64,000 nt of DNA from Epiperipatus broadwayi (GCA_028023455.1 JAQFVV010000006.1:9424001-9488000), one strand, 5' to 3'; positions 175 to 60,075 are shown, counted from the first letter of the stretch. Program-made: numbers and translations. The notes: a model not told the origin generated them from the letters alone.

Positions 175-436
175 TAATTATTTGTTGGACTATTTTCATC
201 ATCCAATATTAAGTATTAAATGGCTTTCAAAAATTTTTCACTTTATTCAAACTTTCCAAATACATTCAACTGTTAGTAATAGCACAACGTTTCAAGTTGT
301 ATTATTCTTCTTTTTTCTTTGGGTGTTGCTGGCCTGACCAGTGACAGTATAAGCACGGGAATCGAACCACAATCTTCAGATTCATGAATATTGAAATTTT
401 AAGGTAACGTAACTAAGCTATTATGCCAAAGGCAAC
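175..436 (-). repeat. 3' pLTR of the Penelope remnant: tRNA-like head (B box GGTTCGATTCC) plus degraded HHR
   Basis: Reverse complement aligns by eye with 55235-55505 and with 900-1085. Confidence 0.7.
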
Positions 437-469
437 GACCAGTAGAAAAGTCATATACTTATCTATGAG

Positions 470-890
470 GGTCCTCAAGAATTTTTTACTTTTTTTTTAA
501 GAGCAAAGTTAATTAATGGCTTCCAGACATTATATATAGTTGACTTATGGGATTAATTGCTAATATTATGTGAGCAGCTCTTTTCAATTTTCCTTGTACT
601 TTTCCGTAATCATCCAATATTTTTGTATTTTTTTTAATCGAACATATGTCCAATGATACATATGTGGTCTGCTAATTTAAATATATATTTTCTGTTTTCT
701 AATCATCAGTTTGGCTCTTTTAATCACTTTTCAATGGGGTGTCTGGTCTCGCCAATATACACTCTCTCACATTGACATGTTATTCCATAAAAGCAATTTT
801 TGCTTTTCAGCATTTCAGGTTTAGGTTTTATAGATGTCAGAATTCCTCTTAGTGTGATATGACTTTGAAATGTTTTGATGTTATGTTCCA
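470..890 (-). mobile_element. Penelope-like element remnant, GIY-YIG endonuclease (degraded)
   Basis: The frame from 888 reads EHNIKTFQSHITLRGILTSIKPKPEMLKSKNCFYGITCQCERVYIGETRHPIEK*LKE, the PLE GIY-YIG signature (Y.I.C.C..VYIGET). It has in-frame stops and frameshifts. Confidence 0.85.
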
Positions 891-899
891 CCACAAAGT

Positions 900-1085
900 C
901 ATGCCAGCAACACTTGGAAAAGAGAGGAGAGTAACACCATTCAAAACATTGGGTTATATTCTAACCTGTGTGCCATTACTAACAACTGAATGCATTTGGA
1001 AAGTTTAAATCAAATATAAAATTTTCAAGACATTCAATATTTAATAGTAGATGATGGAGATAGTCCAACAAATAATTAATACTAA
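900..1085 (+). repeat. Inverted partial pLTR on the 5' side of the Penelope remnant
   Basis: gccagcaacac...ctaacc...gaatgcatttggaaagttt...gatagtccaacaaataattaat is an inverted copy of 175-330. Confidence 0.7.
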
Positions 1086-2995
1086 AACACCATCATATAT
1101 AGAGGCAAACCTCTCCATGTAGTAGTGATCATGTGACATTTAGTGGTTTAAAATGACATCATCACAGACCTTCAGATAAATATGACTTTTATTGTATGAA
1201 ATATGACGTATCCTTACAGTTTACTATTGGATCAACTGACAGTTCTTTTGGGTTCCAAATCAACCTCAAAAAATTAAAATCTTAATTATTCAATACCCGC
1301 TTCTCTTCCATCCTCAGGATTGTAATCTTTTCAAAAGTCTATTTATGTAGTATTTACTTATGATTCATATATAATAATCCTAATTAAAAATAAAATTTAG
1401 ATTAAGAAAGATTAAGTAATAATATCGCCCCTCAACACAAGCCAATCATTTGAACTTTTTGATTACGTTTACAGTTATTATGATTACCTTTTTTTATATT
1501 TTATTATTTAAATGTTATATATGTACAGTGCATAAGTAATTACAAATTCGTATTCTACATTCAAAAACAGTATACATTTTTATTTTGCAAAGTAATTTGA
1601 GATAATAAACTGATTTTAATAATTGTAAATCGGGAAAATTTCATTATTAGGAATAAGCTTGCAACTTAATAACTTCAAATATGCAGTTATCCAAGCAATT
1701 TGCATTCCACATTCCAAAAGATGCAACTGAGTGATAGAAGTATTAAATTCATCGGTCTTTTTCTGATGCGTAATGTCACCAATGCTGAAATAATAAGAAT
1801 AGCCCTTTTCTTAACTTTTTTCCTAATCATTTTGCTGTAACCGACAACCATGTCTGATCACAATCATATACTTGATAATTAGACATGCAAATAAGTATTG
1901 AAGATTATGTACAAACCAATTCAGATGATTTTAACTGACAATTATTAGACCAGTAAATTGATAAGTCAAAAATATAGAATTACTTATTGTATTAATACAA
2001 TCTAGTAACTACATTATTATTGTGAGCTCTAAGGCAGGTGTAGGTCATTTAATACCTAATTCAGCGCATGTATCTTTGGTTGTGGAAATCACCGGTCATC
2101 ATTTTTCTCATGATTTCATATGACGAGCTTCATACAATATCTTTCAGCGGCAATTTTTTCCTCCAACTAATCCTGCTCTGACTCATTCTTTTACGAGCCT
2201 CCATTTCTCAAGATTAATTCCAAAGTTGCGATATTCTAATCAAAATAATTGCTCACAACTTCCTAATAGTTTAACTTATTTTACCAATGATTGCTTAAAA
2301 ACAGTAAATACATTGACAGCTATTCTAATGTTCACTACAGTATTTATATTCTTTTGCCTTTTTGCTTAATCTACTTCGAATATAAATTATGATAAACATA
2401 TGTAATACATGAATTAATAGATCACCATTGCATTTAACTTTTGACATTAAATAATAACTAAATTACAGATCTTTCAATTATTGTCACGTAATCATTATCA
2501 ACGGCATATAAACATATAAAGGTTATATATATATATATTAACTCCCACAATGCACTATTTTGTGTTATTTCCCATACTTCCTAAATTTTCACATTAACTT
2601 CCTCTGTTAACAAATAGTTTATTTTATTCTTCTTTTCTCATTATTCTTCTGTTTGTATAATATTTTTATTTTATCCAAATCAAATAGAAATTGTCATTAA
2701 AGCGTGCAAAATAAATAATGCTCAAACACCTTCAGCATTTAACGGCCATGAAAATAAATGTAATGGATAATTTGTCTGTATTCACTTTGGATAAAATAAA
2801 AATATTATGTAAAGAGAATAAGTATTAATTTTTATTGTAGAAAACAATACTATATATGAGCAAAAAAAATTTATTCTATAAAAAAGATCAAGACATTACA
2901 TAATTTTACATCAATGCAGGAATGTTGCTGTCGACAGGTTCTACTGCATTCATCATGAATACCATTTCCTACGTTTACACTAGCTGTTAAAACAG

Positions 2996-3289
2996 TAGCA
3001 AACTTCTCCATACATTAGTGCCACTCAGTGCAAGCTAGAGTAATCAACAGATACAAGAAGGTTTGTGCATAAATATCTTATCTAGTGCCTATTCGTCCAA
3101 TATTCACCAGACTAGTTTCTAGTTTGTGGCTTTCATCAGTCAGGAGTGTTGGATCTGAGAGCACTGCACCTAGATCTGAGAATATTAAATAAGCAGACAC
3201 TAGATAAGAATTTTATGCACAAATCTTCTTATATTCCATTGATTGCTAAGGCTTCCACTGGGTGGCACTACTGTATGAAGAGTTTGCTA
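2996..3289. mobile_element. Family A foldback; HHR-like motif retained in the left arm only
   Basis: Inverted arms; minus strand CTGATGA aagccacaaacta GAAA CTAG TC at about 3110-3140. A shorter family A hairpin lies at 3566-3682. Confidence 0.75.
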
Positions 3290-4392
3290 ATGTTCTATTG
3301 CATTTCAATAGTTAAATGTGCAAAGATGTAAATATTGGATAAAATCATCAGACATTTGAATCTTTAAAGATTAATCAAGTGTTCTTTTTTAACCTAATAT
3401 AATATTTGTATGTATCTAATGCACGTGTAATAACATCAATCAAACGCTTAAGATTTTCTAGGTTTCCTGGATTAATTACTTCGCAAGATTAAAAATAATT
3501 CAACAATGCATCTCTTATTCCTTCCTCTCATGATCACTATTTTTTATGCTTGCTCTTAACTGTTATTAAAGCAGGCAAAATTCTCTATACATATTGCCTC
3601 TCAATGCACAAGCCTTCTGGTATCCATTGATTACTCTGACTTGCACTGAGTGGTAATATGTATAGAGAGTTTTGCCTGTTTTATTCCTTCCTGTCATATA
3701 AACTTACTATATCTATTCACAGGTTGCAGGAAACTTAATCAAACAGAAAACATAAATAATAGTTATTAATACATAATGGACATATATATTTGGTAAATTG
3801 TTTTTAAGTATTCAATCAATAGATGAAAAAAATATCAATTATTCCCCTACCCTTTCTGTTACTAACTTCATGTCAGCTTATTTTAAAATTAATCCCCTCC
3901 CCAATCTTTCTTTACAGAAATACACCTTTAAAAAGTTTACAGCTGCTACAGCATTTTCCAGAAAAAAAAAATAAAACATTTTAAAAACAAAAAGCATACA
4001 GGGCACTTTTATTCATTAAGTTTAATAACTTCTAAGCATTTATTTTACTTAATTTCAAATATAAGGGTATGATGGTTTATTTTTATTTACTGCTTTTAAT
4101 GCAAGAGTATTCAAAACTAAATAAAAAATATTACTCAAGTAAATCATAACTCATGTTAAAATAATAATAAAAAAGTCTAATGATGATGAACATGTTTAGA
4201 ATCTCCCTCACAATTTTGTACATATTTTAAGTTGTCAAATTTTCAGTACCTAGTTTTAATAGTATTGTATCTGTACAACCACCATTTGAAAACAAAAGTA
4301 AAAATAATGATTACTGATTGCAAAGCAACAATAATTATATAATCTAAAAAAAGAAGCCATATTTCAATAAACATTACATAAGCTATTCTTAC

Positions 4393-4401: not shown

Positions 4402-4495
4402 CTGTTAAAAAAAAAGATTTAATTAAATCGGAGTAAAAAAAAACAACAGTGTGTCAAATGTAATTTTTAAATATAGACAATTATACAATAGATTA

Positions 4496-4588
<93 letters not shown>

Positions 4589-8031: not shown

Positions 8032-8214
8032 CTAAAATTAAAAGTAAAAAAAAAAAGATTTGTAAAATAGATCCCTAATAGAAAATAGTTTATTTACAAA
8101 ACAAATGTTAATAAATTCTAAAACATTCTTGATAAAACACGTACCTATACTGCCGCCGATTCATTCAACAAGCACATTTCCCACACAAACTTGCAAATGA
8201 TTATCATTTTTATA

Positions 8215-8470
8215 ACTCTTATCTTTCTTATTGCATTGCCAAATCCATGTAATAATAATGTCATCTTTGCTTTAGATTACTTCATACAATGTTTTTTTTA
8301 CAACTATGACGGTTTCGATTGCACCAGCAATTTTCTTCAGAATTTCTATATAAGTAGAAGTTCTGAAGAAGATTGCTGGGACAATCAAAACCATCATAGT
8401 GAGTTGTAAAAAAGCATTGTAAAAAGTAATAACAAACATAGATGATATTAATATTATTAATATTATCATT
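8215..8470. repeat. Family C foldback: one minus plus one plus HHR monomer
   Basis: Minus strand: CTGAAGA A AATTGCTGGTGCAATC GAAA CCG TC. The plus copy at 8363-8395 has GAAA mutated to AAAA. Confidence 0.75.
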
Positions 8471-9745
8471 TTAAATAAATATATTAACTGTCATACTATA
8501 TTTTAGCCTAGATATAGTTATCAAATCTACTTCATTAAAAATCAATATAGAACTAATTATTAACTATAGATATAAAATCATATTAATTTAATATCTTTCG
8601 CCTTTGTTGTCAATATTTAAATACATATCATCTATTCACGGAGCAACCAAGTTCAAAAACGTTACAATGACAATTCACATGCCAGAACCCCGAAGAATCA
8701 TTTACATGAACTTCATTCAAGATTAAAAATGTTCATAATCTAAAGAGTTTTAAGCGACAATGTTTTTAATTCAATCCTTCACATGGTCAATTGTATTCTA
8801 TTTTATAGATGAATCACTTTGGAACACATTATTATCACTACAACAAAGTTAAATTCTCGAATTTAGTAAATTTGAAAAATTTCTTATTTAATTTTAAGAA
8901 ATATAATATATATAAAATATTTTATAAATGTTTTTACTTACTGTGCACTAAAAAGCCAAAAATAATTGTTTTTTTTTAAAACTACAATTGGAATTTTTAC
9001 GTTTAACTTGAAATAATAACAAGGAGTGTCCAGAAATTAATTAATTCAATCAATAGTACAACCCATGATTTTATTTCAGGTTAAATATAAAACCCTCAAT
9101 TGTGATTAAAGAAAACAAGTATTTGTGGCTTTTTAATAGCACAACAAATAAATATGTTTATTTATAAAATATTTTTTATATATACTATTTTTAACTTTTT
9201 AGTATTCGGATATTTTTTAGTAATTATTTTTATCTAAAATGAAAAAGAAAAACAATATTAGAGACTGTATAATACTTGAAAGAAAATTTGTAACGCTTTA
9301 AAAATAGATTCTAATATCTGTTTATGAAAGGAGCGTTTTTAAAAAAGTAACTTTTACAATCAAGAAAAATTAAGATTTGCTTTTATTTCTATTTTATTGA
9401 TATATTAACATTTTTTTAGTGTCAGCAGTTTTTAAATAAAAGCGTTTAAAAAAATATATCAATCTTTTGCATGCATCACCACTTACTGAACGGAGATCAA
9501 TGGACTTGAAATTCAGTCCTCCAACATCATTACAATAAATAAACAACTGGAGAACCCTGAAATATTTCACTGTCATATTGCATAGTGATCGATTTCTAGC
9601 ATATGTACAAAATTTGAAGAAATCTATTTGATAGAAGTATGTTAAAAATCGATTACAAAATTTATCCTAATCAAATAAAAAATTACTATGTTAAATAAAA
9701 GTGTTTCATAATACAAATTTTATACAGATAAAAAAAAAAAATTAC

Positions 9746-9951: not shown

Positions 9952-10754
9952 CTATTATGAAATATATATATATATATATTATTATTTAAATCAAATAAAA
10001 TGTCCATTATAGATTAATCATTGTAATAATAATAAAACAACAAAGTATTAATGGTAATAATAAGTTTTACAAAGAACTATTAGAAAATAGAGAAGTACTT
10101 TTGGTTAGTTTCATAGCCATCTTCAATTGAAAATCTTTTGAATCTGCAGAAGAAAACATTATCATGTGATATCCCATAATTCATGAATTTTAGCATTCAC
10201 ACTTTGTCTAATTTAATTGAAGATTTCTATTTTTATTTATTAAAATTGCCTCTTTGGGTTTTCTTTTATTATGGTTTCTTTCCTCATGAAGACGTCTAGT
10301 ATTTACCAGGTTGAAATTATAAATAAAATCACATTTTTTCATTCTCGAAGAAAACAGATGCTTAGATTAACTTGATGCTATTCTTAATTCTTATTCATTT
10401 ACATAAAGTATTCTTCAATACTATAACTCGATTCACTTATGTACGAAGCCTTGCACTTACATGAAATTTGATAAACAATATTATTTTTTTTGTTTCAAAT
10501 GTATAGACATTTTTTGAATTATTTATTACTATTATGTGAAACAACAAAATTAAGCATTATATAACTGTCTATCCATATTTCCAATAAAATTAGCTTGAGC
10601 ATTTAAAACATATGAAATAGATACCCATTTTTCATTGTTAACTTCCTGCTAAATTGATATAAAGTATAGCAAAGTTGTTTATTTATTATACCTAACTTCA
10701 ATCACAGATATACAATTCATAAAATAATATCTTCACTTGTTTAAGGATATAATT

Positions 10755-11505: not shown

Positions 11506-13779
11506 ATGATCTCTGCAGTTAGTAAATAAATTAAGAATATAATGAATAAATGTTTCAGAAGCAGATTTTTTTAATTCTGCCCCAAAACTATCTACTACAG
11601 ACTTGAATAACTAACAGATACTAAATGATAGTACTTTTAAATCTACCTCTCATACTATCTTACCCATAAGAATAATTTCCGTTTATGTCAGTGAGGTTTT
11701 GGACTTCTTTATCAAACCCTTTAACCTATAGTTCCTTTTCTCCACCACCCCTCTGTTACATCTTTTTTTAAAATACAATTATAAAAAAAAAAATTTAAAA
11801 AAAACTCCTTAATATTCTGAATCCACAACTTCTTTAGATATGAATAAATAATTCAAATAACTATTATATTTTAATATCCCATTTTTTGAACGATTTTTAC
11901 TTTTTATTGTTGTTTAGAATGTTGAATACCAACAAGCATTATATGATTACTCGTACTTGCATATAAGGTAAGCTGTTTGAAATAATTTTCTTCACACTAT
12001 TCCAGCGCCATCTATTGTGAAGATGCTATCACCTAATATCCGTGATACTCTTTAAGACAAGATATTCTAGATAAAATGAAAAGAATTGTTTCTAACAGCA
12101 TACATCATATATGCAACCAGAGATAGTCATGTGATATTTGCTAATATATATATCCAGAGAGAAATGTAAACAAATTTTAAATAACTTACTGTAGAATACT
12201 TTCTGATCCACTCCCCCAAAAGAAAAATTGAAAGTGAAGATATTATTCGCTTAAACTAATCAATTCCTTACTAATGGGGATTTTACTGATTTGCAATATC
12301 CTTTTACCAACCAAGAATTAAATGGCTAGTTATACTGGCTGCAAACTAACACCATGGAAATTATAGAATGAAAATATATGTTTTTTTTTATGTATGTATA
12401 AAACTGTGCATTTAGTAAAACACTCTGACTTAAGAACAAACAATGGCATGTGATTACAATATCAACACGTACACAGTATAAATATTGCTTATAATACTTC
12501 TTTCATATACACTTCAATGCAAACAAATTTTCTTAAAAAACTTCTTTATTTTCCTTACAGTTTCGACTGTCCAGCAGTCTTCATCTCTGCTCTGATGAAG
12601 ACTACTGGTCAGTCAAAACTGTAAAGAAAATAAAGAAGTGTTTTAAGAAAATTTGTTTGCATTGAAGTGTGTATGAAGATAAGCAAAGAAAGTGAAAGAG
12701 AAAAATAAGAGAATACTACATGTACACAGTAGCTTGAGTTTTTTTTAACTTCTTTATGCATCATACAACAATATAAATTTGTGATTACTTCTTAATTTTA
12801 AAATATAACAAGAATTGCTCTGAGGTTTATCTTTTGCTGTTCAAAGATTTTCACAAATGTGTAGTCATCCGAAAGGAGGACCATAAGAAAGTCACTTAAT
12901 ATAAGTTCCAGGATCAGATTGCGACCGTGTATCAATTGGACAAGTTCTTTTAGCAAAAAAAGAAAACATCAGAGATGTATTAATTAAAATATAAATTTAA
13001 TATATAAAATAATAGTGGTTTCTGACCCTTAATTATTCAGATCATAGGTGGCATGCAAGCATAAATCCTGGATGTAAATAATGGACAATAATAAGACTAC
13101 CAATAATTATTTAAATGAGCATGTAAATAATTCTACAGCCTATCAAACATGTAACAATAAGAATATAAATCTATTTCTTAAAATAAACAAGGGTGAATAC
13201 ATTTCTAAGACAAATTACAAGCAAGATTTTGACAGAATTATTTAAATAGACTTGTAAATGACAACCGTATTTTATTATATCAAAGCCAATGTATTTTATT
13301 GGCGAAAATATGTGACAAAATAGATTAGCATCGATATAACAAAAGATGTTATTTACAGGTTTATTAATTGATTCCATGGAAATCTTCTTTTAAATTGCCT
13401 TAGTAACGTATTCGAACTTGTGAGATTCATAAAATAGGCAATCTATAAATAAAGTGCTAAAAAGGCTAAAGTAATGTTTAATGGATTTTCTCAGAAAAAG
13501 AAAATAAAAATTGATACAGAAGAACAACTACCAATACCTCGGACAATAACAATGAATGAAATTAATTATAGAATTAAAATTGACTGAAGTGCTTTTCATA
13601 GAAATAACGAAATATTAAATGAAAAATATGTTTGTGTATTTGAAAACAAAGGTTTCCAATAAATGTGTTTTAGCAATTCTCAGATTTGGACACTTAAAAA
13701 AAAAAAAAGAGTACAAAGATTTCGGATCACTCAATGAAGTATGAACAGACAGGGATAACAAGAAGAGATTAAAAATGAA

Positions 13780-15864: not shown

Positions 15865-15897
<33 letters not shown>

Positions 15898-16035: not shown

Positions 16036-16490
16036 TTAGAATAACAGAAGCTAAACTCTCCATACAATAACACCATTCAGTGCAAACCAGAGTAATCGAT
16101 GGCTGAAAGAAGGTTTATGCATAAAATCCCCATCTAGTGCCTACTCGTCCAATATACACAGACTAGTTTCTAATTTGTGGCCTTCATCAGTGAGGAACTT
16201 TGAATCTGACAGCACTGCACCTAGATCTAAGGCTCCTCACTGATGAAAGACAAAAGATCTAGATCTAGGTGCAGTGCTCTCAGATCCAAGGCTCCTCACT
16301 GATGTAAGCGACAAGCTAGAAACTAGTCTGGGGATATTGGTTGAGTAGGTACTAGATGGGGATTTTATGCACAAATCTTCTTGCATCCACTGATTGCTCT
16401 GGCTTCCACTGAGTGGTGCTACTGTATGGAGAGTTTAGCCTCTGTGTATAAGTTTCTGTAAGTATAAAGAATGGTGATCATGTGATGTTT
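16036..16490. mobile_element. Family A foldback (about 400-bp hairpin) with HHR-like motifs in both arms
   Basis: Minus strand: cctca CTGATGA aggccacaaatta GAAA CTAG TC at 16160-16195. Plus strand: ctcctca CTGATGT aagcgacaagcta GAAA CTAG TC TGGGGA at 16292-16334. Confidence 0.8.
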
Positions 16491-16990
16491 AGTGAACATT
16501 AGAATAAACATGTAATAAATGATAAGTAAACAGTAAAGTAGTATAATAAGCAGCAAGCGGATTTTAGTTTACAGTTTAGTTGATATTTACTATATATTTC
16601 TCATTTGTGGAGGTGATATTTTTCTATTTGGCCATAAATTCCAAATGAAGCCATAATAGACTCTGCACTGCATGGTGTGTGTTTAATATCAGCATAATAT
16701 CTAGATGTGAGAAAAAGAAATAGATCCTTTTGACATACCAAACACCAATAACTATTCAAATTTTAGTTGGTAAGTATTCAGATCTCTTGTACACCTAATA
16801 AAGCTGTACACTTCTATTACATATATGGTGTGAAAACAGTCCGTTATTTTAAGTTGCGTGTCAGTTTACAATTTTTAAAGTTTTTATATTCAATAGAATA
16901 TGTTAAATTTCATGCAATGATTATTTACATATATATATACATATATACAGTTATTAAATATATATAAATAAAATAAAATAAACAATCCAC

Positions 16991-24477: not shown

Positions 24478-24726
24478 ATTTAACATGTTCTTTTACAATA
24501 CCTTAGTTTAAGGCTTCAATTATTCGTCTACATTATCTCTTCTAATATATCCATTCTACTTCATTTCAGCTTATTAATTATTTCAATGATCTGACATGTA
24601 CTTATTCCTTCACCCATGTATTTTGCTTTCAATTATTTCTTATTAATCCCAACATCTCCATAGTTCATTGTTTGATTTGCCATTTCAGTAGATGTCTATT
24701 TGTGTCACTATGTGTGCATATTGATT

Positions 24727-25385
24727 AAAAAATCAAGTCAGATGTCACACGAGCTAATTTTAATAAAGCTCGTATTTACAAATGTTATGTATAGAGTTCG
24801 CAAAACAAACTCTTAACAAGCTTTGAAAATACTCTCAATCCCTGACCGTTTTCTGCATCTAGCGTCGTCAGTGAGATGTTAGGATATTCATTAGATTAAA
24901 AATACTAGGACTAGCCCAGCACTTTATCTAATGTATAACTAACTATTCAGAAGAAAATCTGAAACTTTCAGACATCCATATGTCTAAAAATCCAGCTATC
25001 TAACTCAAATAGCCATATGGGACTGAACTAAGTTCAGATACACCATATATTAATAGCTCTGGCAATATAAAATCGCCAAAGCCTTAGTAGCAAAAAATAA
25101 ATTGATAAAAAAATCAAATCAGATGTCACGTGACCTAATTTTAATAAAGCTCGTATTTTCAAATGTAAATTCGAGTTAGATAGCTGGATTTTTAGACATA
25201 TGGATGTCTGAAAGTTTCAGATTTTCTTCTCAATAGTTATACATTAGATAAAGTGCTGGGCTAGTCCTAGTATTTTTAATCCAATGAATATCCTAACATC
25301 TCACTGACGACGCTAGATGCAGAAACCGGTCTGGGGTTGAGGGTATTCTCAAAGCTTGTTAAGAGTTTGTTTTGCGAACTCTATA
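24727..25385. mobile_element. Foldback element (family D relative), arms about 24790-25010 and 25165-25385, HHR motif in each arm
   Basis: Plus strand: ATCTCA CTGACGA cgctagatgca GAAA CCGG TC TGGGGT at 25298-25337. Mirror copy on the minus strand at about 24836-24880. Confidence 0.8.
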
Positions 25386-25948
25386 TATAAAATATGTGTG
25401 CATATATACATAATTTTATAATTTTAAATCAATTCAAATACAAACTGACAAAAAACAATTATTATTTTTTTATTATATTTACAGTATCTAATTAGTTTTT
25501 CTTCCATTCAGATTAACTTTTCAAGATGCCTTTAATTTAATAACTTCCTTCAATGAATTAAATTACAACATCTCCCTCCTGTGGTTATTTTTCTAATTAC
25601 AATCAAAAGGCAAGTGTACTTAACACAAGAAGATGTTATACTTCAACTAACTGATGAGATCATCAGATGAAAGCGTTTTGAAAAGTTTTCTGAATGGAAG
25701 AACACTAGAGAGAGTAAATTAATTAAATTTTAAAAAAAGTCTGTCATTTGTCAATTTTTATTCAAAATGATTTAAAATTATAATGTATATAATAGAGTAA
25801 TTAAAAATCATCATTTAAGTTATATATGAATATATGCCTAATTCTATTTTTACACACACACAATAACATATTAGACACATTAGTAAATAAGTATCAATTT
25901 GGCATATTTGATATCCAATTCTTTGTAATTTATTTTTTAGATCTAAAA

Positions 25949-32471: not shown

Positions 32472-32819
32472 ATATATATATAATGCACCTTTCCATTTTT
32501 ATTTGCTCTAAAAGTAGTGTGTAGTATATGTAAGAAAATATGATACATCATAAAAATTGCTATCCAAATTATCACATGAATATTAAAAATTGTATGACAA
32601 AGAACAAACTGAGCAAACTCAATTCTATTACCTTTATATATTTGGAGGTATATTTATTGAAATATATTCGTAAATGATTTTTGAATAACGTACCACAGAT
32701 ACATGATTCACAATTATAATTAAATCTTTTTAAGACACATGGTAATCAGCTTTATTTCTTGATTGTCCTTTTTTAAAGCAGATCAAACTTTCTCTTCGAG
32801 TGCAAACAATAACAAATGA

Positions 32820-33255
32820 ACATCACATGATCACCATTTCTTATGCTCGCTCTTAATTGTTATTCAAACAGGCAAAAATCTCTATACCTATTGCCATTCA
32901 GTGCAAGACACCAAAATGTATAGATACTGAACTGAGTTCAGACCTATACTATATGACTATATAAGCTGATGAGCTTGGATTGAAAATATTATGGTGTTTT
33001 CAATTTGAGTCTCATAGTTTTGTAGTTAAGGAGAGATAAAAAGTGCTGCTGGAGAATTGCATTAGATCCTAAGATCTAGGTGCAGTGCTCTCAGATCCGT
33101 GGCTCCTCACTGACGAAGGCCACAAGCCAGAAACTAGTCTGGAGATATTGGATGAATAAGCACTAGATGGGGATTTTATGCACAAGCCTTCTGGCATCCA
33201 TTGATTACTTTGGCTTGCACTGAGTGGCAATATATATAGAGAGTTTTGCCTGTGT
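32820..33255. mobile_element. Family A foldback with an HHR-like motif in the right arm
   Basis: ctcctca CTGACGA A GGC-CACAA-GCC A GAAA CTAG TC tggaga at 33103-33145. Confidence 0.75.
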
Positions 33256-33748
33256 GAGTAATAAATGAAAATAAAATAAGAACAGCTGAGATTTCATTTC
33301 AATGTGATTGCAATTTGGTTTCCTAAGATTTTATGCGAAAGCTGTGACGAAATCATTATGAATGTCGGCTATTTTTTATTATTTTATTTTTATACAATTA
33401 TTGTCATGTCTTTAGACAAGTTACTGGTTGGTTTCAAAATACGTAATGAAAAAAAAACAAATTTCTCTTCCAAGAAGATTTCAGTGAAGACGGCAAATAT
33501 TAGTCAAAATAGTTATCAACCATATACATGGTGTTTCTAGTTCATAAAATTATACGCAAATATATACATATATAATATAATAGTAATAATAACAAGTCAG
33601 ATGTCACATGATTTATATATAGCTTGCACTTACAAATATGTAAAATTAAGAGCGTGCTAATAACTCTAAACAAGCTTTTTTTTTTATTTATGATAAATGC
33701 TACTACAAGAGAAGGCATTCAAATCATTTTTATCTTGGATTGTCCCCA

Positions 33749-33789
33749 TCCCCAGACCAGTTTCGACCTATGGGTCTCTTCAGTGAGGA
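33749..33789 (-). ncRNA. Minimal type I hammerhead ribozyme (mirror copy, LIMK-sense strand)
   Basis: Reverse complement: TCCTCA CTGAAGA GACCCATAGGTC GAAA CTGG TC TGGGGA. Confidence 0.8.
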
Positions 33790-33912
33790 GTTGGGACATT
33801 AGATCTAAAAAACCAACTCAAGCAAAGCATTTATCTAAAAGATAATTGTTAGAAGAATATCTTTTAGATAAATGCTTTGCTTGAGTTGGTTTTTTAGATC
33901 TAATGTCCCAAC

Positions 33913-33953
33913 TCCTCACTGAAGAGACCCATAGGTCGAAACCGGTCTGGGGA
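33913..33953 (+). ncRNA. Minimal type I hammerhead ribozyme (canonical core)
   Basis: TCCTCA CTGAAGA GACC-CATA-GGTC GAAA CCGG TC^ TGGGGA: stem I 6 bp, stem II 4 bp with G10.1-C11.1, palindromic CCGG stem III loop, GUC cleavage after 33947. Confidence 0.85.
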
Positions 33954-35290
33954 TGGGGACAATCCAAGATAAAAATGATTTGAATGCCTTCTCTTGTAGT
34001 AGCATTTATCATAAATAAAAAAAAAAAAGCTTGTTTAGAGTTATTAGCACGCTCTTAATTTTACATATATAATATAGTAAAAAGATAACTGATCTTCTAT
34101 TCCAAGCTGTGTGTTGTCTCTGAATCAATGCATGTTCTATGTAGTGACATAGTTTAGCTAGTCATTCAAAAAAACTTTAAGACTCTAAACATCTCTAAAT
34201 CGTAAGTTATGATGCGAAATGTATTCTTTCAAAGCGCTCCTTGAAATCTTGCAAATCACTTGAAAACATAAATTGTGATTCTTACCGGGCACATTTTAAA
34301 TGTTTCAGTAGCAATTTTGCTCCATTTAAAACCAAAACGTAATGCTAGCGCATTGTTCTAAAGTGGGTTAAGGTAGGAAATATAGTATCATGTTTTGTAT
34401 CATGTGATTACATCATGCTAATGCCTTAAAATTTTTGTGACGAATAGCTAAATTCATTAAGAGATGGCATTGCAGGCCACTTGGAGGAAAGAACCAATCA
34501 CTAACCTCCTTTTTACTGAGATAAGCTTTGTATATATTCACATAAAACTTGACAGCACTTCATTCTACTTACATATAACAGGTGACACACTAATGTTATT
34601 ACACTTTAACAATACAGTTTATAAAATCATAGCGCTATAAAAATAAATATCTCATTTATATATGTTTAATTTTTAATAAGAATGATGTATTGTAAATTCT
34701 AGAAAATTTCGCAAGCGACATTCATTCAGGCATAGTAAAAATTTAAAGTGATCGCTTAATATCTTCACGCTTTCATTTCCAAATGCTTAAGATTTGCCTA
34801 TACACAAACGTTTGGATAGAAAGAATAGATGGATTCATTCTATTTTTTCACAAAGACTACATCTTGTGTTTGGAAGTGAGAGTATTCATTTATAGTTAAA
34901 AATCCACAAAGCCCATATGCATTAGCTTAATTAATGGCTGATTATTACTATTACAGTTTATAAAAACATAGCGCTATATAAAATAAATATCTCATTTAAC
35001 AAAGTTAATAAAAATTCTTAATTGTAGATGTTTCTTTTTATAGGTATTTCAAGTCAAATGTAATTTCAGCCAACTATACCACAAACACAATTTCCATAAT
35101 TACATATAATAATCAATCTACCACTTCCAACTACACCTGATAGCTTATCTCATGGGTAGGGAGAACAACTCTTCTGGCTGTACCAGACAGTCTGCCTCAA
35201 GTTGGTAATAGTCTTAGCAGTGTCTGGTCCTTATGTGGACTGGCCCAGCTGCGTGGACACATAGCAAATTGCTATCATAAAAATGCTTAC

Positions 35291-50007: not shown

Positions 50008-50143
50008 TTTATTTGTATCAAACTAACAGTTTCGACTGTCCTGCAGTCATCATCAGAGCTCTTGACAAAATAGAAATAGGATTGTCAAGAGCTCTGATGA
50101 TGACTGCAGGACAGTCGAAACTGTTAGTTTGATATAAATAAAG
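50008..50143. mobile_element. 136-bp palindrome (family E) with an HHR in each arm
   Basis: Plus strand: gagct CTGATGA T GACTG-CAGGA-CAGTC GAAA CTG TT agttt at 50089-50130, with an exact mirror of this core on the minus strand. A degraded relative lies at 12555-12625. Confidence 0.8.
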
Positions 50144-51369: not shown

Positions 51370-51590
51370 TTGATATTAAATGCCATCATTCCCCTTCCTA
51401 TCTCAAATTCAGAAAAACACCATAAAATACTAATGCTTGAATATCATAGCACCTCACTGAAGAAAGCCTGAAGTTAGAAACCGGTCTAAAGTTAGGGATA
51501 TTCTGAAAAGTTTGTTAAGAGCTATTGGCACACTCATTAGATAACATTTGTAATACAAGCTTATTAAGTCACATGATATATGACTTGATT
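51370..51590. mobile_element. Degraded family D copy with HHR core
   Basis: cctca CTGAAGA aagcctgaagtta GAAA CCGG TC at 51452-51486, followed by aaagtttgttaagag...gtcacatgat shared with the other family D copies. Confidence 0.6.
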
Positions 51591-52809
51591 TCTTAGCAAT
51601 GCAACATATTCATGTATAATGCCAAAATAATTTTGTGCCTTTAAAAATATACATTTTTTTTTTTAAGATGATATATTTAAAAAAAAATAACCAATTGGAC
51701 AGCCCTGGGAAAGTCATGTGAATACTGCTGAGACAAGGAGTTAATTGTTACTTGAATTGTAATTTTACACTTCAAAAAATAGAATTATTACTGCTGCCTG
51801 GTATAATTTAGCACAGTAGTATGACCTTGTATTTAGAACTCCAGGTTTTAGGATGAATTCTCTGCTGAGTAATGCACAAAAACCCAATGTAATGGTTAAA
51901 TGCTTAATCTGCCAACAGGGGGGGCTTCAAATGTCACATGACTTTTAATAAAATTGTTCATACAATCACTAATATTATCATCATTGTTCAATAAATTATT
52001 GTACAAATTTTAAACAAGAACAATAAAACCATATATATATATATTTGGGGGGAACTTGCGTATAGTCTGGATCTGATGAAAGTTGCTAGCAACAAACTTA
52101 TGTGTACATAATGACTAAATTAAAGATATTCACGATCTTCTAAGAAAATAGCTGAAGATATATAGATATATTCTTTTTTGGTTTGTTTACCATTTGTAAC
52201 AGATTTATATTGTTAAAAATCTACTTGTTGAAAGATTATTTCTCACAAAAAAATGTTAATGCTTGTTTGTTTTTCTCCCAGTAAATAGTTATAGACGGCC
52301 ATTTTGAAAAATAAATCTATAAGTTTACTTGGTGGAAAATAATTTCTCACAAAAAATGTGAATGTGTGTTTGTAGTCGTTTGTTTCAGATCCACTAAATA
52401 AAATTATAGGTCATCAGTTTGCAAATAAATCTTTGATTGGAAGTTTGTCAGTAAGTTATTTTCTGAGATCAGTAAATTAAAAAATTAGTGCCAGACTAAC
52501 ATATGTGACATGTTATTGCCAGTCATTAATACGTAAGTACCATTTTTAACTCATAAAATGTTAATATTAGTAATAATCATTTAATAACATCAAAATACGT
52601 TTTGTTTTGTTTTTTTTTTTAAAAAAAGACTACTACTTTTTAGTCGTTATTCATATCTTCAAATGAGACTTTTAAATTTTTAAGAATCATTTAGATATAT
52701 TTTTTCTTTTCGAATTGAGCAAAGAAAAAAGGAGTAGTCGTTTCCAGAAATAACTAATCAGAGATAATATTTTAAATACATGCCTAGCATTTATATTGTA
52801 AGCTAGGTG

Positions 52810-53790
52810 TAATTAGAGGAGATTTGAACCCAGATTTTCAAGCTCCCTTTAGTCATCTACTCCATTTTATACAACCCATACACCTGACCAGATATATGTG
52901 AAAAAGATAAATGATCTTCAATATATGTATTGTGTGTCGTCTTGCATTGGTGGTCGAGAGGTCAGCGCGACTGCCTTGCACTAGCAGGCAGTTGCCCGGG
53001 TTGTGGGTTCGCGTCCCGGCCGATGCTATGACACTTAAAAAAATTATATATATGTATTGTGCTGAACCAGCACTCATAAGTTGGACCAGATCATCATCTT
53101 CCACATATATATACAATTAGTACTCTGTTTATATTAAGATAGCAAATTCCCAAACTTTAATGGACATACATCAATCTTCTCCACTCTACAACTCTTCAGC
53201 CATCTATATCAGTGAAAATCTGATGATAGTGCATTCAAATCCCTTATTTGCCAATTTTTGTTGTGCCATATCCAGGTTGACCATAAATCAATCTGACCCC
53301 TCATATATAGAACCTTAAGCCCATTTAAATACACAGAAGGGAGATAGGCAGAATACATGCTGAATATGTAATATTTTAAATACATATTCAACCTGTATTC
53401 TGCCAATCTCTCTTTTGTGTATTTAAATGGGCTTTAGATCCTACATATGAGGGGTCAAATTGATTTATGGTCAACCTGGATATGGCACAACAAAAATTGG
53501 CAAACAACGGGTTTAAATGCACCATCATCAGATTTTCAATAAATATGGATGGCTTAAGAGTTTGAAAAGACTGAAACCTGTCAATTAAAGTTGGGGCATT
53601 TGCTATCTTAATATAAACCGAGTACTAATTATATATATATATGTGTTGGAGATGATGATCCGGATCAACTGATGAGTGCTGGTTCAGCATGAAATACATA
53701 TATTGGAGATCATTTATCTTTTTTGCATGTATGTGGTCATGTGTATCGTTTGTATAAAATGGAAAGTCTGGGTTCAAATCCCCACTAATT
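52810..53790. mobile_element. About 980-bp foldback element with an HHR in the right arm and a degraded, SINE-disrupted HHR in the left arm
   Basis: Long inverted arms centred near 53375. Plus strand: TCAA CTGATGA GTGCTG-GTT-CAGCAT GAAA TACATA TA TTGG at 53665-53706. Confidence 0.8.
52935..53047 (+). mobile_element. Short tRNA-Gly(GCC)-derived SINE with 14-bp TSD
   Basis: GCATTGGTGGT...CCCGGGTT...TTCGCGTCCCGGCCGATGC resembles eukaryotic tRNA-Gly-GCC; A-rich tail; TSD ATATATGTATTGTG at 52921-52934 and 53048-53061. Confidence 0.8.
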
Positions 53791-54555
53791 AACCAAACAT
53801 AAATAAATACATTAGAATCTTCAATTTTATAAATTAACCCCCTCTCCCCATTGAATCTTTAATACCAATAAAATGGATTTTGAACTTTTAATATGTTCTT
53901 ATTTATATATACATACATTGAATTTTCTATCTAACTTTCGAAGAGGTTGACATATATTAGATATGATAAACCAACAGTCAAACATCTATTAAAAGTTGTA
54001 GATAAAACCAATTTTATGATTATTCGGTGAATTGCTGTATATGTAAAATATAATATAATAATTAATCTTACATACAATTTGGATATTAGGGATCGACTAC
54101 TCTACATTCGCAATAGTATTTACAGACTGGAATAAATAGTGAGTCTGATGTATCTGCTGTCGAAATAAAAATATTCAAATAAAATATAATAAATAAATGA
54201 TAGATTTGTGGACAAAAAAAAAAATGTTAAAATTCACATTTGTGATGGCATGATTCTTGGGTTTTATATTACAACTAATCAATTTAATATCAGATAATGT
54301 ATCTTTTGCATTTTATCATCAACAGTTTTCATCGCCCTGCATGGTCTGGGCAATGGCAGGACATGAAACTCTGGACCTCAAAGTTCAAGGATCGCAACCC
54401 AATTGATACTTCCAATAGTCAAATTTCTTATAAACTCCTGAGAAACAAACCATTAAATTATTACTAATCATAAGTATTATTTGCAAAATATGAATGCACA
54501 TAAACACTTTTAATATTATAATGAGTGATAATAATAATTATAATATTAATATCAT

Positions 54556-55000
54556 TTATGTTCTTTATTACTTTTTACAATGCTTTTTACAACCCACTAT
54601 TGATAGTTGCTCCAGCAATCTTCTTCAGATCTATTATTACTTTTTATAATGCTTTGTACAACCTACTATTGACAGTTTCGATTACCCCAGCAATCTTCTT
54701 CAGAACTTCTACTATTACTTTTTACAATGCTTTTTACAACGCACTACTGACAGTTTCAATTACTCAGACAATCTTTTTCAGAACTTCTATTATAAGAAGT
54801 TATAGTATAAGAAGTACTAGTAGAAGTTCTGAAGGTGATGCTGGGGCAATCAAAACTGTCAATAGTGGGTTGTAAAAAGCATTGTAAAAAGTAATAGTAG
54901 AAGTCCTGAAGGGAAGATTGCTGGGGTAATCGAAAACATCAATAGTGGGTTGTAAAAAGTACTGTAAAAAGTAATAAAGAACTTAAATGATATTAATATT
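54556..55000. repeat. Family C array: three minus plus two plus copies of an about 78-bp HHR-containing monomer
   Basis: Unit starts at 54568, 54637 and 54715, then inverted copies. Monomer core: CTGAAGA A GATTGC-TGGG-GCAATC GAAA CTG TC. Confidence 0.8.
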
Positions 55001-55234
55001 ATATGTATTTGGCAATGCAATACAATTATAGTGATTAAGTATAAATACAGTATTTTTTCCTTAATTTACAGGACTTAAAAAACTCTTATTTCCGGTGTTT
55101 TCCTGAAGGTTTGTGATGATAGTGTTCTAGTTGTATTTTTATATTGGACTATTTCCGTCAAATAATATATGTATTGAATGTCTATAGAAATCAGGAGGAA
55201 CCTCATAGATAAGTATATGAAATTACTATAGACT

Positions 55235-55505
55235 GTTGCCTTTGGCATGATGGCTCAGTTGGTTAGAGCATTACCTTAAAATTCAAAACTCAAGAATCTA
55301 AGGATCCAGGTTTGAATCCCATGCTAGTACTGTCACTGGTCAGGCCAGCAACACCTGAAGAAGAGGGGAGACTAATACCTCTCGAAACGTTGAGCATATA
55401 CTAACCTGTTTGATGTCACAGTTGAATGTATTTGGAATATTTAAATATAGTTATTTTTTCTAAAAGACATTCAATACATACATTAGATGATGGAAATAGT
55501 CCAAT
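55235..55505 (+). mobile_element. Solo tRNA-headed SINE/pLTR with HHR motif
   Basis: A box TGGCTCAGTTGG at 55251-55262; B box GGTTTGAATCC at 55309-55319; CTGAAGA-A-GAGGGG/CCTCTC-GAAA-CGTT at 55355-55391. Same family as 175-436. Confidence 0.75.
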
Positions 55506-56629
55506 ATAAAAATACAATCTTATTTGCAGTGTTTCAATTTAAAGTTTTCTTTTTTTTTTTTTTGGCCTCCATTGATTTAATGAAAATGGGGGGGGGGGTT
55601 TCTTCCTAATTTAGGACCTTTAAAGCATTATCACATAAAAAAAGATGGCTTTTAGCAATTATTTTGATTCTATTCCATAGAAATTTGAAAAAAAATTGTA
55701 TATTTTTATTAATTATTAAGACTGTGTGTATTGTACTAATTTTTAAATTAAAAAACATATATAATCAAAAATTATGCCCAATAAGTTACCATTGTAGTAA
55801 ATAAGTAGAGGATATTTATGTAGGAATACAAAATACTTTTGACCACAAAAACATTTGAACAGTCATGGAAGACCTGATGGTAGAATTGGAAAACAATTAT
55901 AAGATGAAAGTGTTGTAATGAAATTTAATTATGGTGACACAAATGAAAGAAAAACAAAAAATTTGTAGAAAAATTGTATATTACGATTTTTTTCTTTGAA
56001 AAAAATGCTAATCGGAAATAGATGTGGAAATATTCTAATGAAAGCCAACAGAATTGAACTTTATGCTAACTATGAGAAAATATGTATTTCACGATTGCAA
56101 TGTTCTTAACAAATTCATCACAAGAGGTGATCATTAATTAGTAGGATGCAAGATACAAACCAATGCAAAATAGAAGACAAAAACTATAAAAAAGTATAAA
56201 CAGTTTATATTCCTAAACTTCAAAAACACTTTAATGAATTTAAATTAAAATTTATTAATGATTTTTGAACCCAAACAGATTTTGGAGCCGGTTCAAACTT
56301 AACAGACATCAATAAGATGATTGATACGCTATTGTGAACTGCAACAAAGATAATACAAAAATTGAGCTATGTAAAACGTAATAAAAATTCCAAAACTTAA
56401 ATATATCACCGAACGTAAAAATAATTCCATTTCCATAATTTAAATAAAGTATATAACCCAAAAACAGCTCCAAGTAAAAAGTCAGAAAGCTAGTAACCTT
56501 AGAATATATCATTATGATATATAAAACTACATATAATCATTAGTTTTAAATTCCTGCTGATATCTATGGTTTACTCATTACAAACCATATATAAATTTTT
56601 TCCAATGGATTATAACTATAATATTAATA

Positions 56630-56930
56630 TTATCTATATTCTTTATTACTTTTTACAATGCTTTTTTCCAACCCACTATTGACAATTTCGATTGCCCCAG
56701 TAATCTTCTTCAGAATTTCTACTTATATAAATAGAAGTTCTGAAAAAGATTGCTGGGGCAATCGAAACTGTCAATAGTGTGTTGTAAAAAAGTATTGTAA
56801 AAAGAATATAAGTAGAAGTTCTGAAGAAGATTGCTGGGGCAATCGAAACTGTCAATAAGTATGTTGTAAAAAGTAAGAAAGAATATAGCTGGATATTAAT
56901 ATTATATAAATTTGGCAATGCAATAAAAAA
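56630..56930. repeat. Family C array: one minus plus two plus HHR monomers
   Basis: Intact core at 56821-56853: CTGAAGA A GATTGC TGGG GCAATC GAAA CTG TC. Confidence 0.8.
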
Positions 56931-57509
56931 GATAAACTTAAGGATTATAGCTACTGATACTAACAGTCTGAAAGAAATTTGTAAACAAAGCAAAAGAGCC
57001 AAATGTCTCTTTCTTTTTTTTAATTAATAAATCCAAATGGAAAAGGTTTCACTTCTTTCAAAACTATCCTTTACAGAACCATCATTTCTTTTTTTTTTTT
57101 TTTCTGAGAAACTGTTCAATGTTTATATGCTTCATAATCCATTTGCTTTTGAAATAAAATATCCCTACAAACAATTTATGAATTCGTGGATATTCAGAAT
57201 GATTTACAAACTTTTTCTAACCAGATTAAATGATAATCAATTTGTGATATTTGAATATGTAAATAATTAATGAAGATTTATTTTTATGTTTATATTAAAT
57301 AAAATTATTTTCTGTTCCTATTTTAAAAACTTTTAGTTTCAAATTATATATATATATTTATAATTTATGGAACCATAAATCAGTACGTTCAAGCATTAAA
57401 TATTTATGTTCTCATGAAATACATGGAGTCTATTAGTACAGAATCATTGAATTTAAATGGATATACAAAAAAAAAAATTTGGAGAAAGGCAAATGAGATA
57501 TAAAACATC

Positions 57510-57845
57510 GCATGATCATTTCCTATGCTTACAAGCTGTTAAAACAATAGCAAACTCTCTGTGCAATAGTATCACCCAGTGCAAGCCTCAGTAATCAATC
57601 AATGGAGGCAAGAAGATTTGTGCATAAAATCATTGTCTAGGACCTACTCATCCAATATCCTCAGACTATCTAACTTGGGCTTTCAGTAGTGAGGAGACTT
57701 GGACCTAAGAGCAGTGTATCTAGATCAAGGTTCTTAGATCCAATGCTCCTCACTGATGAAAGCCAAGAAGATATTGGATAAGTAAGCACTAGATAACGCT
57801 TTCATATGCAAATCTTCTTGCATCCAGTACTATTGTATGGAAAGT
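57510..57845. mobile_element. Family A foldback (degraded)
   Basis: Shares the tttgtgcataaaat, ctaga and ctcctcactgatgaaagcc motifs in inverted arrangement. Confidence 0.65.
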
Positions 57846-59744
57846 TTTAACTGAAAATTTTGTTTAAAGTAAAGGCAAAATTTACTTTAAATGCAGTGCA
57901 AATTTTAATAAACAGATTTCTGAATCATTTTAGGATTTCTTTCTATTTCTAAAACAACAGCTGGAACTAGCGACCCAATCAAAAAATTGCAATAATAAAA
58001 TAATTACATGGTTAATTGGTTGAGAGAGCACAATATACATTTGCGCAATCAAATGGCAGAATGAGCACAAGTTCTACTTGAGCGAACCAAAAGAGATTTC
58101 TTTTTAAACTTACTTAGCTGAGAATTGAATCAGAAATCTTTTGTTTTCAAGTCAACCATTCTAACCACTGCACTCAGTACAATGCAATAATCAGACTTAT
58201 ATACTCCAATTTTGTTAACAGTCACTTGGATTGAACATTATTTTGGCTCGACTCCAATGTATTCTCAAATATCATTCAATTTTCAATTGTGTATCAAATA
58301 GCTCCTTCAATTTTACATTCAACAACTACATTAACAGCAGTAATCTGTTTCATTCCAGAGCCATTTATGTAGACAAGAGTAATCAAAAAGAATTTAAATA
58401 AATAAGTGAAATACAGAGCTCCTCACCGATGATGGCTAAAAGAAGAAATTAGTCTGGGATTTGGTTTGAGTTCCCTCTAATGCTCACGGAATAATACTCA
58501 TGCTTGCATAAATGGCTTTTGAATAACGAATAATGAAGACCCCACTAATTGGAGCTTTCATCTGATATATTCTATATAGTTTGTTACAGTGCTGGAGTAT
58601 AGGCCAGCTCTATGATTTCTGGTTCTTAAACTTCCTACAAACTCCAGAGAATTAAAACATCCAATTATTTTTTTGCCCAGGCAGGGTTAGTTTGGTGGTA
58701 AAATGGCAGATCCTGGAGTTTCAAGTCTATGGATCATGGCTCAGCTGTTTCTTCTGATGCATGAACTTCATATGAATTCCTGAAACTGTTATTAACTGCT
58801 GAAAAATAGCACATCCAAAGATGAAAATCCAAAGGGAATTATATAATCCCTATCGTATCTTCTCTTTTCCCTCTCACTCTTGAGATTTTGCCCAATTTAA
58901 TTTGTTAAAACATCTTCCATTATGGAAAATCAAATAACTACTACATTATGCCTTAATAGTCAATTTAAAAATAATATATCGTGATAAGTAGATATCAAGA
59001 ATTATTGTATATACATATACCCTTTGTAGTCACTTAAATGTAGAAATATAATTTCGAATCTTGCAACTATACAATTAAAATTACAGAGAGAAAAAAATTG
59101 GAAATGATTTTAAAAAATAAAAAGCTACCCAAAGAATTAAAGATTAAAAATAACAGCATTAATTCCACTGGGATGGAAAGACCCAAGACAATCCTAATAA
59201 AAAAATAACATGATCAACAATACTTGACCTAATTCCAAATTAAACATAGCTATTCATTAGCAAATTCTTCTATTCTTTCTACTCTTACGCCATCTAATGT
59301 AAGTTTTCGTAATCAAGATACCATAGTAGGGCCTAATAAACCCTTATCTAGTGCTGCCCCATTATGGCTCTTATTGGTAAAAAGCTTTTTGGATTTTTTT
59401 GAATCATGTACTTGAATCTAATGGACCTTTCCTACAATTGCCATTTTTACTTTCAATTATATTATCAAGCTATCGGCTCAAATTGAAAAACTTTTTAATT
59501 CTGACCAAAGAATAAAGGGAACTAAAGTTATAAAATCAAAAATTACTCTAATATATAGAAAACAGGTTTCAGATCTATATAACTATGCATGCAAATAGGC
59601 TTGGATTGAAAATGTAAAAAAAAAAAATGTTGCTGAAAGAAAAGTACATTAGATCCAAATGACCTGATCAAAATTCCAAAAATTATTCATTGATGGAAGC
59701 CATAAGCTAGAAACTAATAAGGAATATTAGGATAGAAGTGATTT

Positions 59745-60075
59745 CAGAGGCAAAACTCTCCATACAGCAGCACCATCAATACAAGCCAGATTAATCAATG
59801 GATGCAAGAAGGTTTGTGCATAAAATCCCTATCTAGTGCCTACTCATCCAATATCCCCACATTAGTTTCTAGCTTGTGGCCTCCATCGGTGAGGTGTCTT
59901 GGGTGTATTCTCAGATCCCAAGACTCCTCACTGATAAAAGCCACACACTAGAAACTAGTGTGGGGCTATTGGATGAGTATGTACAAACCTTCCTGCATTC
60001 ATTGATTACTCTATTGTATGGAGAGTTTTGTCTCTGTGAAAGCAGCTTGTGTAAACATAAAGAATGGTGATCATG
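59745..60075. mobile_element. Family A foldback (degraded HHR motifs in both arms)
   Basis: ctcctca CTGATAA aagccacacacta GAAA CTAG TG tgggg at 59924-59965, with a mirror on the minus strand. Confidence 0.7.

Follow-up and report, generated by a model that had tools for sequence, protein, structure and literature searches.

Head-to-head hammerhead foldbacks with a Penelope-type insertion footprint in Epiperipatus broadwayi

Foldback sequences that carry hammerhead ribozyme motifs are frequent in a 64-kb stretch of Epiperipatus broadwayi DNA, hereafter the window, to which all loci, families and motif counts in this text refer. The window is AT-rich (27-32% GC), and minus-strand self-BLAST shows short palindromes to be abundant in it. 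It holds 17 inverted-repeat insertions and one solo copy from about six sequence families (A, C, D, E, F and a coding Penelope remnant, P). Every insertion bears a minimal type I hammerhead motif or is a truncated copy of a motif-bearing unit. It is highly probable, in our judgement, that the foldbacks are independent insertions of short non-coding hammerhead retroelements, together with one coding remnant, that were mobilized by a Penelope-like reverse transcriptase (RT)/GIY-YIG endonuclease (EN). The features behind this reading include head-to-head 5'-truncated arms, target-site duplications (TSDs) of variable length (9-15 bp), partial tandems, a tail of 37-50 nt at one end, and an EN remnant with the same layout.

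Families were grouped by all-against-all BLAST, and a sense-strand reference for each was then searched back against the window. The named loci are A1-A7, the 45-bp mini-insertion A8, C1-C3, D1-D2, E1-E2, F, P1 and P2. In order along the window, the copies are:

P1, 172..1081, minus strand: Penelope-like fragment; minus-sense arm from 172 to ~898, inverted plus-sense arm 898-1081.
A8, 1100..1147: tiny family-A double insertion beside P1; a 27-nt minus-sense short end, then an 18-nt plus-sense long end (…ATCATGTGACATTTAGTG).
A1, 2951..3293: head-to-head; 11-bp TSD TCTAyTGCATT at 2940-2950 and 3294-3304; tail left; decayed hammerhead 3113-3139(-).
A2, 3527..3680: family-A head-to-head; both arms truncated downstream of the hammerhead; 12-bp TSD TTATTCCTTCCT; tail left only.
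C1, 8211..8461: family C, one minus and one plus unit; 11-bp TSD ATTATCATTTT; tail (…ATTTGGCAATGCAATAAG…) left only.
E2, 12502..12677: family-E-like palindrome; centre cuts through the hammerhead core; both motifs defective; TSD not found.
A3, 16045..16494: family-A head-to-head; 13-bp TSD AACATTAGAATAA; 50-nt tail right only; both hammerheads decayed.
D1, 24722..25392: minus arm 24722-25166, plus arm 25169-25392 forming the short end; 13-bp TSD TATGTGTGCATAT; hammerheads 24844-24871(-) and 25304-25331(+).
A4, 32813..33256: 95-nt minus arm with tail, 143-bp spacer, 206-nt plus arm; complete hammerhead 33110-33139(+) without antisense partner.
D2, 33580..34061: youngest foldback; 15-bp TSD TACATATATAATATA; complete hammerheads 33755-33783(-) and 33919-33947(+); tail left only.
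E1, 50008..50142: 135-bp palindrome; complete hammerheads 50025-50056(-) and 50094-50125(+); TSD and tail not found.
Solo D-related copy, 51440..51585, plus strand: decayed hammerhead 51457-51486; long 3' end homologous to the D tail; 5' limit uncertain.
F, 52782..53803: 1-kb head-to-head palindrome; 9-bp TSD TAAATACAT; hammerhead-like core 53669-53700(+); left-arm partner decayed.
C2, 54531..55022: three minus-sense and two plus-sense tandem units of ~75 nt; complete hammerhead 54671-54703(-); tail right.
P2, 55131..55517: second copy of the P-family pseudo-long terminal repeat (pLTR); 60-nt inverted arm, then 327-nt direct arm.
C3, 56619..56941: one minus and two plus units; 12-bp TSD GGATTATArCTA; 37-nt tail right; hammerheads 56681-56713(-) and 56821-56853(+).
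A5, 57510..57852: old family-A head-to-head; tail left; both hammerheads decayed; clear TSD not found.
A6, 59743..60079: head-to-head; 14-bp TSD AGGATAGAAsTGAT at 59729-59742 and 60080-60093; tail right; both hammerhead cores mutated.
A7, 60592..60771: family-A head-to-head, truncated downstream of the hammerhead; 11-bp TSD ACTTTGAAGAT; 42-nt tail right only.

Hammerhead motifs in the foldbacks

A first pass with the regular expression CTGANGA…GAAA found hammerhead-like strings in most palindromes named by an initial annotation of this DNA. Seven complete motifs are recovered when helix I, CUGANGA, a helix II of 3 bp or more, GAAA, a short helix III and UH are all demanded by a strict descriptor, compared with a mean of 0.015 and a maximum of 1 in 200 dinucleotide-preserving shuffles. 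These are located at 33110-33139(+), 33755-33783(-), 33919-33947(+), 50025-50056(-), 50094-50125(+), 54671-54703(-) and 56681-56713(-). About six further motifs are near-complete, and most others are decayed. Self-cleavage at these motifs is a prediction.

The initial annotation had counted about ten palindromes with the core CTGANGA..GAAA. Palindromes with hammerhead-like cores inside do lie at or near all the coordinates that it gave, but several copies lack this core. At 59745 both cores are mutated (CCGATGG and CTGATAA), the right arm at 16036 reads CTGATGT, helix II is decayed at 2996, and at 12555 one arm has AAAA for GAAA while the other is cut within the core. The core placed at 52810 reads ATGACTA, not CTGANGA, and lies in the outer part of the 1-kb palindrome 52782-53803, which has its canonical core at 53669. 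An ATGACTA…GAAAATC string in the left arm of F is a possible A3-U8 core variant; the right arm is deleted there.

No match was returned from the window by Rfam at the gathering threshold. At a relaxed threshold Hammerhead_1 (RF00163) matches the D2 arms only, and their 31.0 and 30.6 bits stay below the gathering score of 34. Since Rfam is silent on A, C, E, F and P, these five families are classed as hammerhead-bearing by the descriptor and by agreement with traits published for the minimal hammerheads of Penelope: helix III is short and palindromic, and an unpaired nucleotide precedes a long helix II (PMC4209133). Many Rfam models of microRNA (miRNA) precursors also match the foldbacks; we discarded these as generic hairpin matches.

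Two architectures recur. Families A and D have helix I, the core and a GAAAC-NNGG-UC shape in common, and families C and E have one unpaired nucleotide before a helix II of 5-6 bp, followed by GAAACUGU(C/U). The initial annotation had counted at least five unrelated families; they are not fully unrelated, since A and D, and likewise C and E, share their hammerhead architecture. Several points of likeness connect these motifs to the minimal type I hammerheads of Penelope-like elements (PLEs) (PMC4209133): the CUGANGA…GAAA core, palindromic helices III (ACCGGU, ACUAGU and AACGUU), the unpaired nucleotide ahead of a long helix II in C, E and P, and pairs on opposite strands. Cervera and de la Pena (2014), who described minimal hammerheads (min-HHRs) in PLE repeats, reported [quoted passage not shown] (PMC4209133). 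Unlike their published counterparts, C and E have a non-palindromic helix III (ACUGU), and helix II of family A has an A.A pair at its base. Over the 202 aligned positions, the only difference between the D2 arms falls in helix III of the hammerhead, which reads CCGG in one arm and CTGG in the other (33941 vs 33761). This is the CpG transition that deamination of methylated CpGs would produce.

Anatomy of the insertions

The arrangement of the copies is uniform. At 17/17 inverted loci the sense copy runs on the minus strand in the left arm and on the plus strand in the right arm, that is, head-to-head with the sense 3' ends outward (binomial p ~8e-6), and convergent pairs number zero among the window loci. 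The initial annotation, which had placed the minus-strand motif in the left arm and the plus-strand motif in the right, was accurate in this respect. A head-to-head inverted 5'-truncated copy is present at 17/18 loci; the D-related copy at 51440..51585 is the sole one without an inverted partner. Together with the duplications, constant ends, variable centres, tails, partial tandems and EN remnant described below, this orientation makes up an anatomy that is established in the window.

TSDs of 9-15 bp bound ten of the insertions (A1, A2, A3, A6, A7, C1, C3, D1, D2 and F), those of A1, A6 and C3 with one mismatch each. Exact shared end words of at least 11 bp that are not of low complexity occur at 6/18 loci searched; in a control over an equal search span, an 11-mer was common to only 2% of random position pairs.

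Within a family the outer ends are constant, and the centre, which marks the point of 5' truncation, is never the same in two copies of A, C, D or E. Arm lengths in family A range from 18 to ~240 nt, and both arms of A2 and of A7 end downstream of the hammerhead. The centres of D1 and D2 differ. The minus arm of D1 comprises ~1.17 tandem units of a ~381-nt unit, so that the tail segment appears twice in the same orientation (24721-24790 and 25102-25166). Family C combines 1+1, 3+2 and 1+2 units per insertion. Its monomer of ~75 nt consists of the hammerhead and ~30 nt, present in 1-3 units per arm (54531-55022, 56619-56941 and 8211-8461). The mini-insertion A8 (1100-1147), with its 27-nt minus arm and 18-nt plus arm, illustrates how extreme two-arm 5' truncation can get.

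These limits bear on the idea that the foldback itself is the transposing unit, a hairpin master copied or excised whole, with orientation and single tail inherited. Such a unit would account for the one long and one short end of each insertion in either genomic orientation. It also predicts a constant centre and variable outer ends, and the reverse is seen, with constant, TSD-bounded ends and a centre that changes in every A, C, D and E copy. We therefore regard it as very improbable.

The ends themselves are of two kinds. All 13 A, C and D insertions combine one short end with one long end that extends 37-50 nt further, and the site of the long end is homologous between copies (…AATGGTGATCATGTGATGT in A, …GTGACATCTGACTTG… in D and …ATTTGGCAATGCAATAA… in C). 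Had the two ends picked their start sites independently, the probability of 13/13 mixed insertions would be at most 1.2e-4. This suggests that the two reverse-transcription events at one target are coordinated rather than independent, in which case they would use different entry sites. In the same 13 insertions the tailed and short ends are never two of a kind, in either genomic orientation. The outer ends of F are likewise unequal, reaching 28 nt and 12 nt past a common CTAATTA. A conserved tail hairpin, as a possible RT entry structure, was not found, the tails of A, C and D2 having no significant fold and only that of D1 having one (z = -4.1). The right arm of A1 starts at the hammerhead cleavage site, a single case that we set aside as being at chance level among ~30 arms.

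It follows from the same anatomy that it is exceedingly improbable that the copies are true DNA-transposon miniature inverted-repeat transposable elements (MITEs) or foldback elements with incidental hammerhead-like sequence, or that the hammerheads are chance matches. The elements are small and AT-rich, their hairpins match many miRNA-precursor models, and the window also contains hammerhead-free palindromes that may be real MITEs (e.g. 23529-23809 and 10747-11508). Against this reading, TSDs are anywhere between 9 and 15 bp long, the copies share no terminal inverted-repeat sequence, their ends are asymmetric, their centres vary, some arms are partial tandems, and a Penelope EN remnant has the same layout. 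Chance would supply 0.015 complete motifs where seven are present.

Penelope-type mobilization

The coding remnant belongs to family P. On its minus strand, P1 carries a broken remnant of a GIY-YIG-type EN at ~511-900 with a stop near 511 (YGITCQCERVYIGETR). The initial annotation was right that this remnant has the geometry of the other foldbacks: the element at 172-1081 is head-to-head with the EN remnant on the minus strand. Compared with residues 670-723 of an 834-aa RT (RVT_1) protein, the EN piece shows 54% identity; the contig that encodes this closest full-length RT protein measures 2.6 kb and has no flanks. A Pfam search with the 58-aa EN piece gave no match, and no RT coding sequence was found within the window. 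Along the minus-sense arm of P1, the EN remnant is followed by the pLTR with a tRNA-like segment, a decayed hammerhead and the 3' end at 172. The hammerhead-bearing sequence common to P1 and P2 begins ~35 nt past the EN stop codon in P1.

The tRNA-derived segment of the P-family pLTR is situated just upstream of the hammerhead, at 55232-55330 and, on the minus strand, at 340-440, and in P1 it starts ~70 nt past the EN stop codon. Its D-arm (GCTCAGTTGGTTAGAGC) is perfect and is accompanied by a B-box-like GGTTTGAATCC; the segment scores 18.8 bits with the Rfam tRNA model against a gathering score of 29; ARAGORN found no tRNA in the window. In the direct arm of P2 the tRNA-like segment occupies 55244-55326 and is followed by a hammerhead-like motif at 55355-55391(+) without antisense partner. 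A T-run lies after P2 at 55548-55560. Schistosome Sm-alpha-type repeats, which resemble short interspersed nuclear elements (SINEs) and carry hammerheads, similarly have an RNA polymerase III (Pol III)-type tRNA-like segment upstream of the hammerhead in a short retroposon. Unlike in these repeats, the tRNA-like segment of P1 lies directly behind the remnant of a Penelope EN open reading frame (ORF) and appears to be part of the pLTR. A Pol III-type promoter may thus be part of a Penelope pLTR, as judged from these sequence features.

No sequence shared with P, the only coding Penelope remnant in the window, is detectable in families A, C, D, E and F, all five of which are non-coding. A terminal motif at 1117-1147 that we first read as common to P1 and family A belongs to the separate 45-bp family-A mini-insertion, and provides no link between A and P. 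The initial annotation had interpreted the MITE look-alikes as Penelope retro-products made of an inverted pLTR plus a pLTR. Mobilization by Penelope is supported by the PLE footprint, but derivation from pLTR sequence is shown for P only. For A, C, D, E and F, "non-autonomous, Penelope-mobilised" is the wording that can be defended.

This footprint is a published one. According to Craig et al. (2021), PLE insertions are partial tandems with heavy 5' truncation, have an inverted 5'-truncated copy and bear a 30-40-bp tail that is often at one end only (PMC8557442). Purified PLE protein is reported by Frangieh et al. (2024) to cleave the two strands of the target and to extend both; it initiates reverse transcription at a pair of neighbouring internal sites, the spacing of which corresponds to the tail, ~100 nt downstream of the hammerhead (PMC11167929). 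By analogy, the enzyme would nick the target with a stagger of 9-15 bp, and each of the two exposed 3' ends would serve as a primer for copying the 3' part of the RNA of the element, which may be longer than one unit, into cDNA. Two internal entry sites, separated by 37-50 nt, would be available, with each synthesis beginning at one of them, and the two antisense cDNAs would grow toward each other until joined at an arbitrary point. The result would be two 5'-truncated copies placed head to head between TSDs with a tail at one end, and after insertion the motifs would decay neutrally. Two-strand priming and the two start sites are adopted from the literature cited. How the cDNAs are joined, as well as any effect on ribozyme activity, we can only infer. 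With a hammerhead 20-160 nt upstream of the entry site, a motif would come to lie near each outer end and face outward. The orientation rule accordingly comes as a side effect of how the elements insert.

Compared with PLE insertion units (Evgen'ev and Arkhipova; PMC8557442; PMC11167929), the window elements are alike in their head-to-head 5'-truncated copies, partial tandems, one-end tail and variable TSDs, in the position of the hammerhead a short distance upstream of the RT entry site, and in the GIY-YIG remnant of one window copy. They differ in that most families are non-coding and span 50-1000 bp, inverted pairs are found at 17/18 loci rather than "often", and tails of 37-50 nt occur one per insertion without exception in A, C and D. 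A second point of comparison is offered by metazoan non-LTR (long terminal repeat) retrozymes, defined by head-to-tail hammerhead units of 150-450 nt that are expressed as circular RNA (PMC7229834); a preprint argues that animal retrozymes stem from PLE pLTRs (Li et al., 2026; bioRxiv 10.64898/2026.07.22.740005). Retrozymes, like the window elements, are non-coding AT-rich type I hammerhead units, possibly tandem, with a proposed dependence on PLEs (PMC7229834; Li et al., 2026), and the D unit of ~381 nt, present in 1.17 copies in D1, falls within the published size range. In contrast, the window copies are mostly inverted truncated pairs, not long head-to-tail arrays, and the family-C unit (~75 nt, 1-3 copies per arm) is below that range.

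Several observations weigh against a Penelope-mobilized origin of hammerhead elements. Neither TSD nor tail was seen in E1, E2, P1 and P2, so that for E and P the assignment draws on orientation and hammerhead only. The window contains no full-length autonomous Penelope that shares its 3' end with A, C, D, E or F, and the partner enzyme is consequently deduced from its footprint only. Rfam sees a single hammerhead family (D, in the copy D2), below threshold, and leaves the others unreported even at E up to 10. At 37-50 nt, the tails slightly exceed the 30-40 bp given in the literature. Finally, published in vitro data report no strand difference in start-site use and do not explain the strict one-tail rule.

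The window elements are an ordinary, published PLE insertion footprint and not a new kind of element. Their value is as a compact catalogue of Penelope-type double-ended insertions, with 18 events in 64 kb from about six families, ten of them with exact boundaries. The catalogue is useful for annotation, as such elements are easily mistaken for MITEs or miRNA hairpins, and for testing models of how Penelope integrates, a step that is still little understood.

Self-silencing and neighbouring repeats

The outward-facing geometry could be imagined as a selected self-silencing device. The antisense arm would be made first in a read-through RNA and sequester the ribozyme, allowing active hammerheads to persist in introns, while transcripts begun inside an arm would run outward and keep a free ribozyme. 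The initial annotation had raised sequestration of this kind, and geometry and fold energy agree with it: the antisense arm comes first in either read-through direction, as the layout guarantees, and the hairpin of whole-foldback D2 RNA has -356.5 kcal/mol as opposed to -283.1 with hammerhead helices I and II enforced, a cost of ~73 kcal/mol. In the minimum-energy fold of D2, 51/52 hammerhead bases are paired with the other arm. The tRNA-like segment upstream of the hammerhead in family P also points outward, and the reported depletion of vertebrate retrozymes from introns (bioRxiv 10.64898/2026.07.22.740005) would give a tolerance mechanism something to explain.

Nevertheless, no sign is seen that this silencing is selected or needed. 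The insertion mechanism alone yields the geometry, and selection would have no alternative form to reject. The arms differ from each other at 29/333 positions (8.7%) within the hammerhead region and at 123/1251 (9.8%) outside it, so that both diverge equally fast (Fisher p = 0.60). Completeness of the motifs tracks insertion age: complete motifs are found in the youngest insertions only, with arms that differ at 1/202 aligned positions in D2 and at 1/61 in E1. Complete or near-complete motifs also occur without antisense partner, in A4 (33110), in P2 (55355) and in one of the two sense units of C3 (56619-56941). Minimal hammerheads are reportedly nearly inactive as monomers, unless dimeric (PMC4209133), and unique stretches of the window have a depth near 0 in two small RNA-labelled contig runs. 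We therefore consider selected self-silencing improbable; it is unsupported and, given the insertion mechanism, unnecessary.

In the same two runs families A and D have high summed depth, for which DNA carry-over is possible. The RNA contigs show no end pile-up at the predicted cleavage sites; such ends cannot be revealed by contigs.

Somewhat less improbable, yet still doubtful, is a combination in which the head-to-head layout acts as a transcription-context switch, with a free hammerhead in outward transcripts and a locked hairpin in read-through, together with coordinated two-site initiation. Were the switch to exist, the read-through hairpin may feed small-RNA pathways, and foldbacks may be better tolerated in introns than solo or tandem copies.

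Other repeats accompany the hammerhead insertions. The left arm of F is interrupted at 52931-53048 by an unrelated GC-rich, tRNA-like and SINE-like insert (…GGTGGTCGAGAGGTCAGCGCG…GGGTTCGCGTCCCGG…), and the outer ends of F (53760-53795 and 52808-52840) resemble a tRNA 3' half (GGGTTCAAATCCCCACTAATTAACCA). Hammerhead motifs, and likeness to any of the hammerhead families, are missing from the palindromes at 23529-23809, 10747-11508, 8894-9194 and 19733-19903, which are possibly true MITEs and would offer a contrast within the window. Direct-repeat pairs are found at 26714-28342/30845-32472 (1.6 kb), which has high depth in RNA-labelled contig runs, and at 40465-42636/43383-45567 (2.2 kb). An ORF fragment repeated at 24006-24389 (minus strand) and 48478-48892 encodes a CxxC…CxxC zinc-finger-like stretch with a weak match to the Spin-doc zinc finger (E = 0.083), and is probably part of another transposon.

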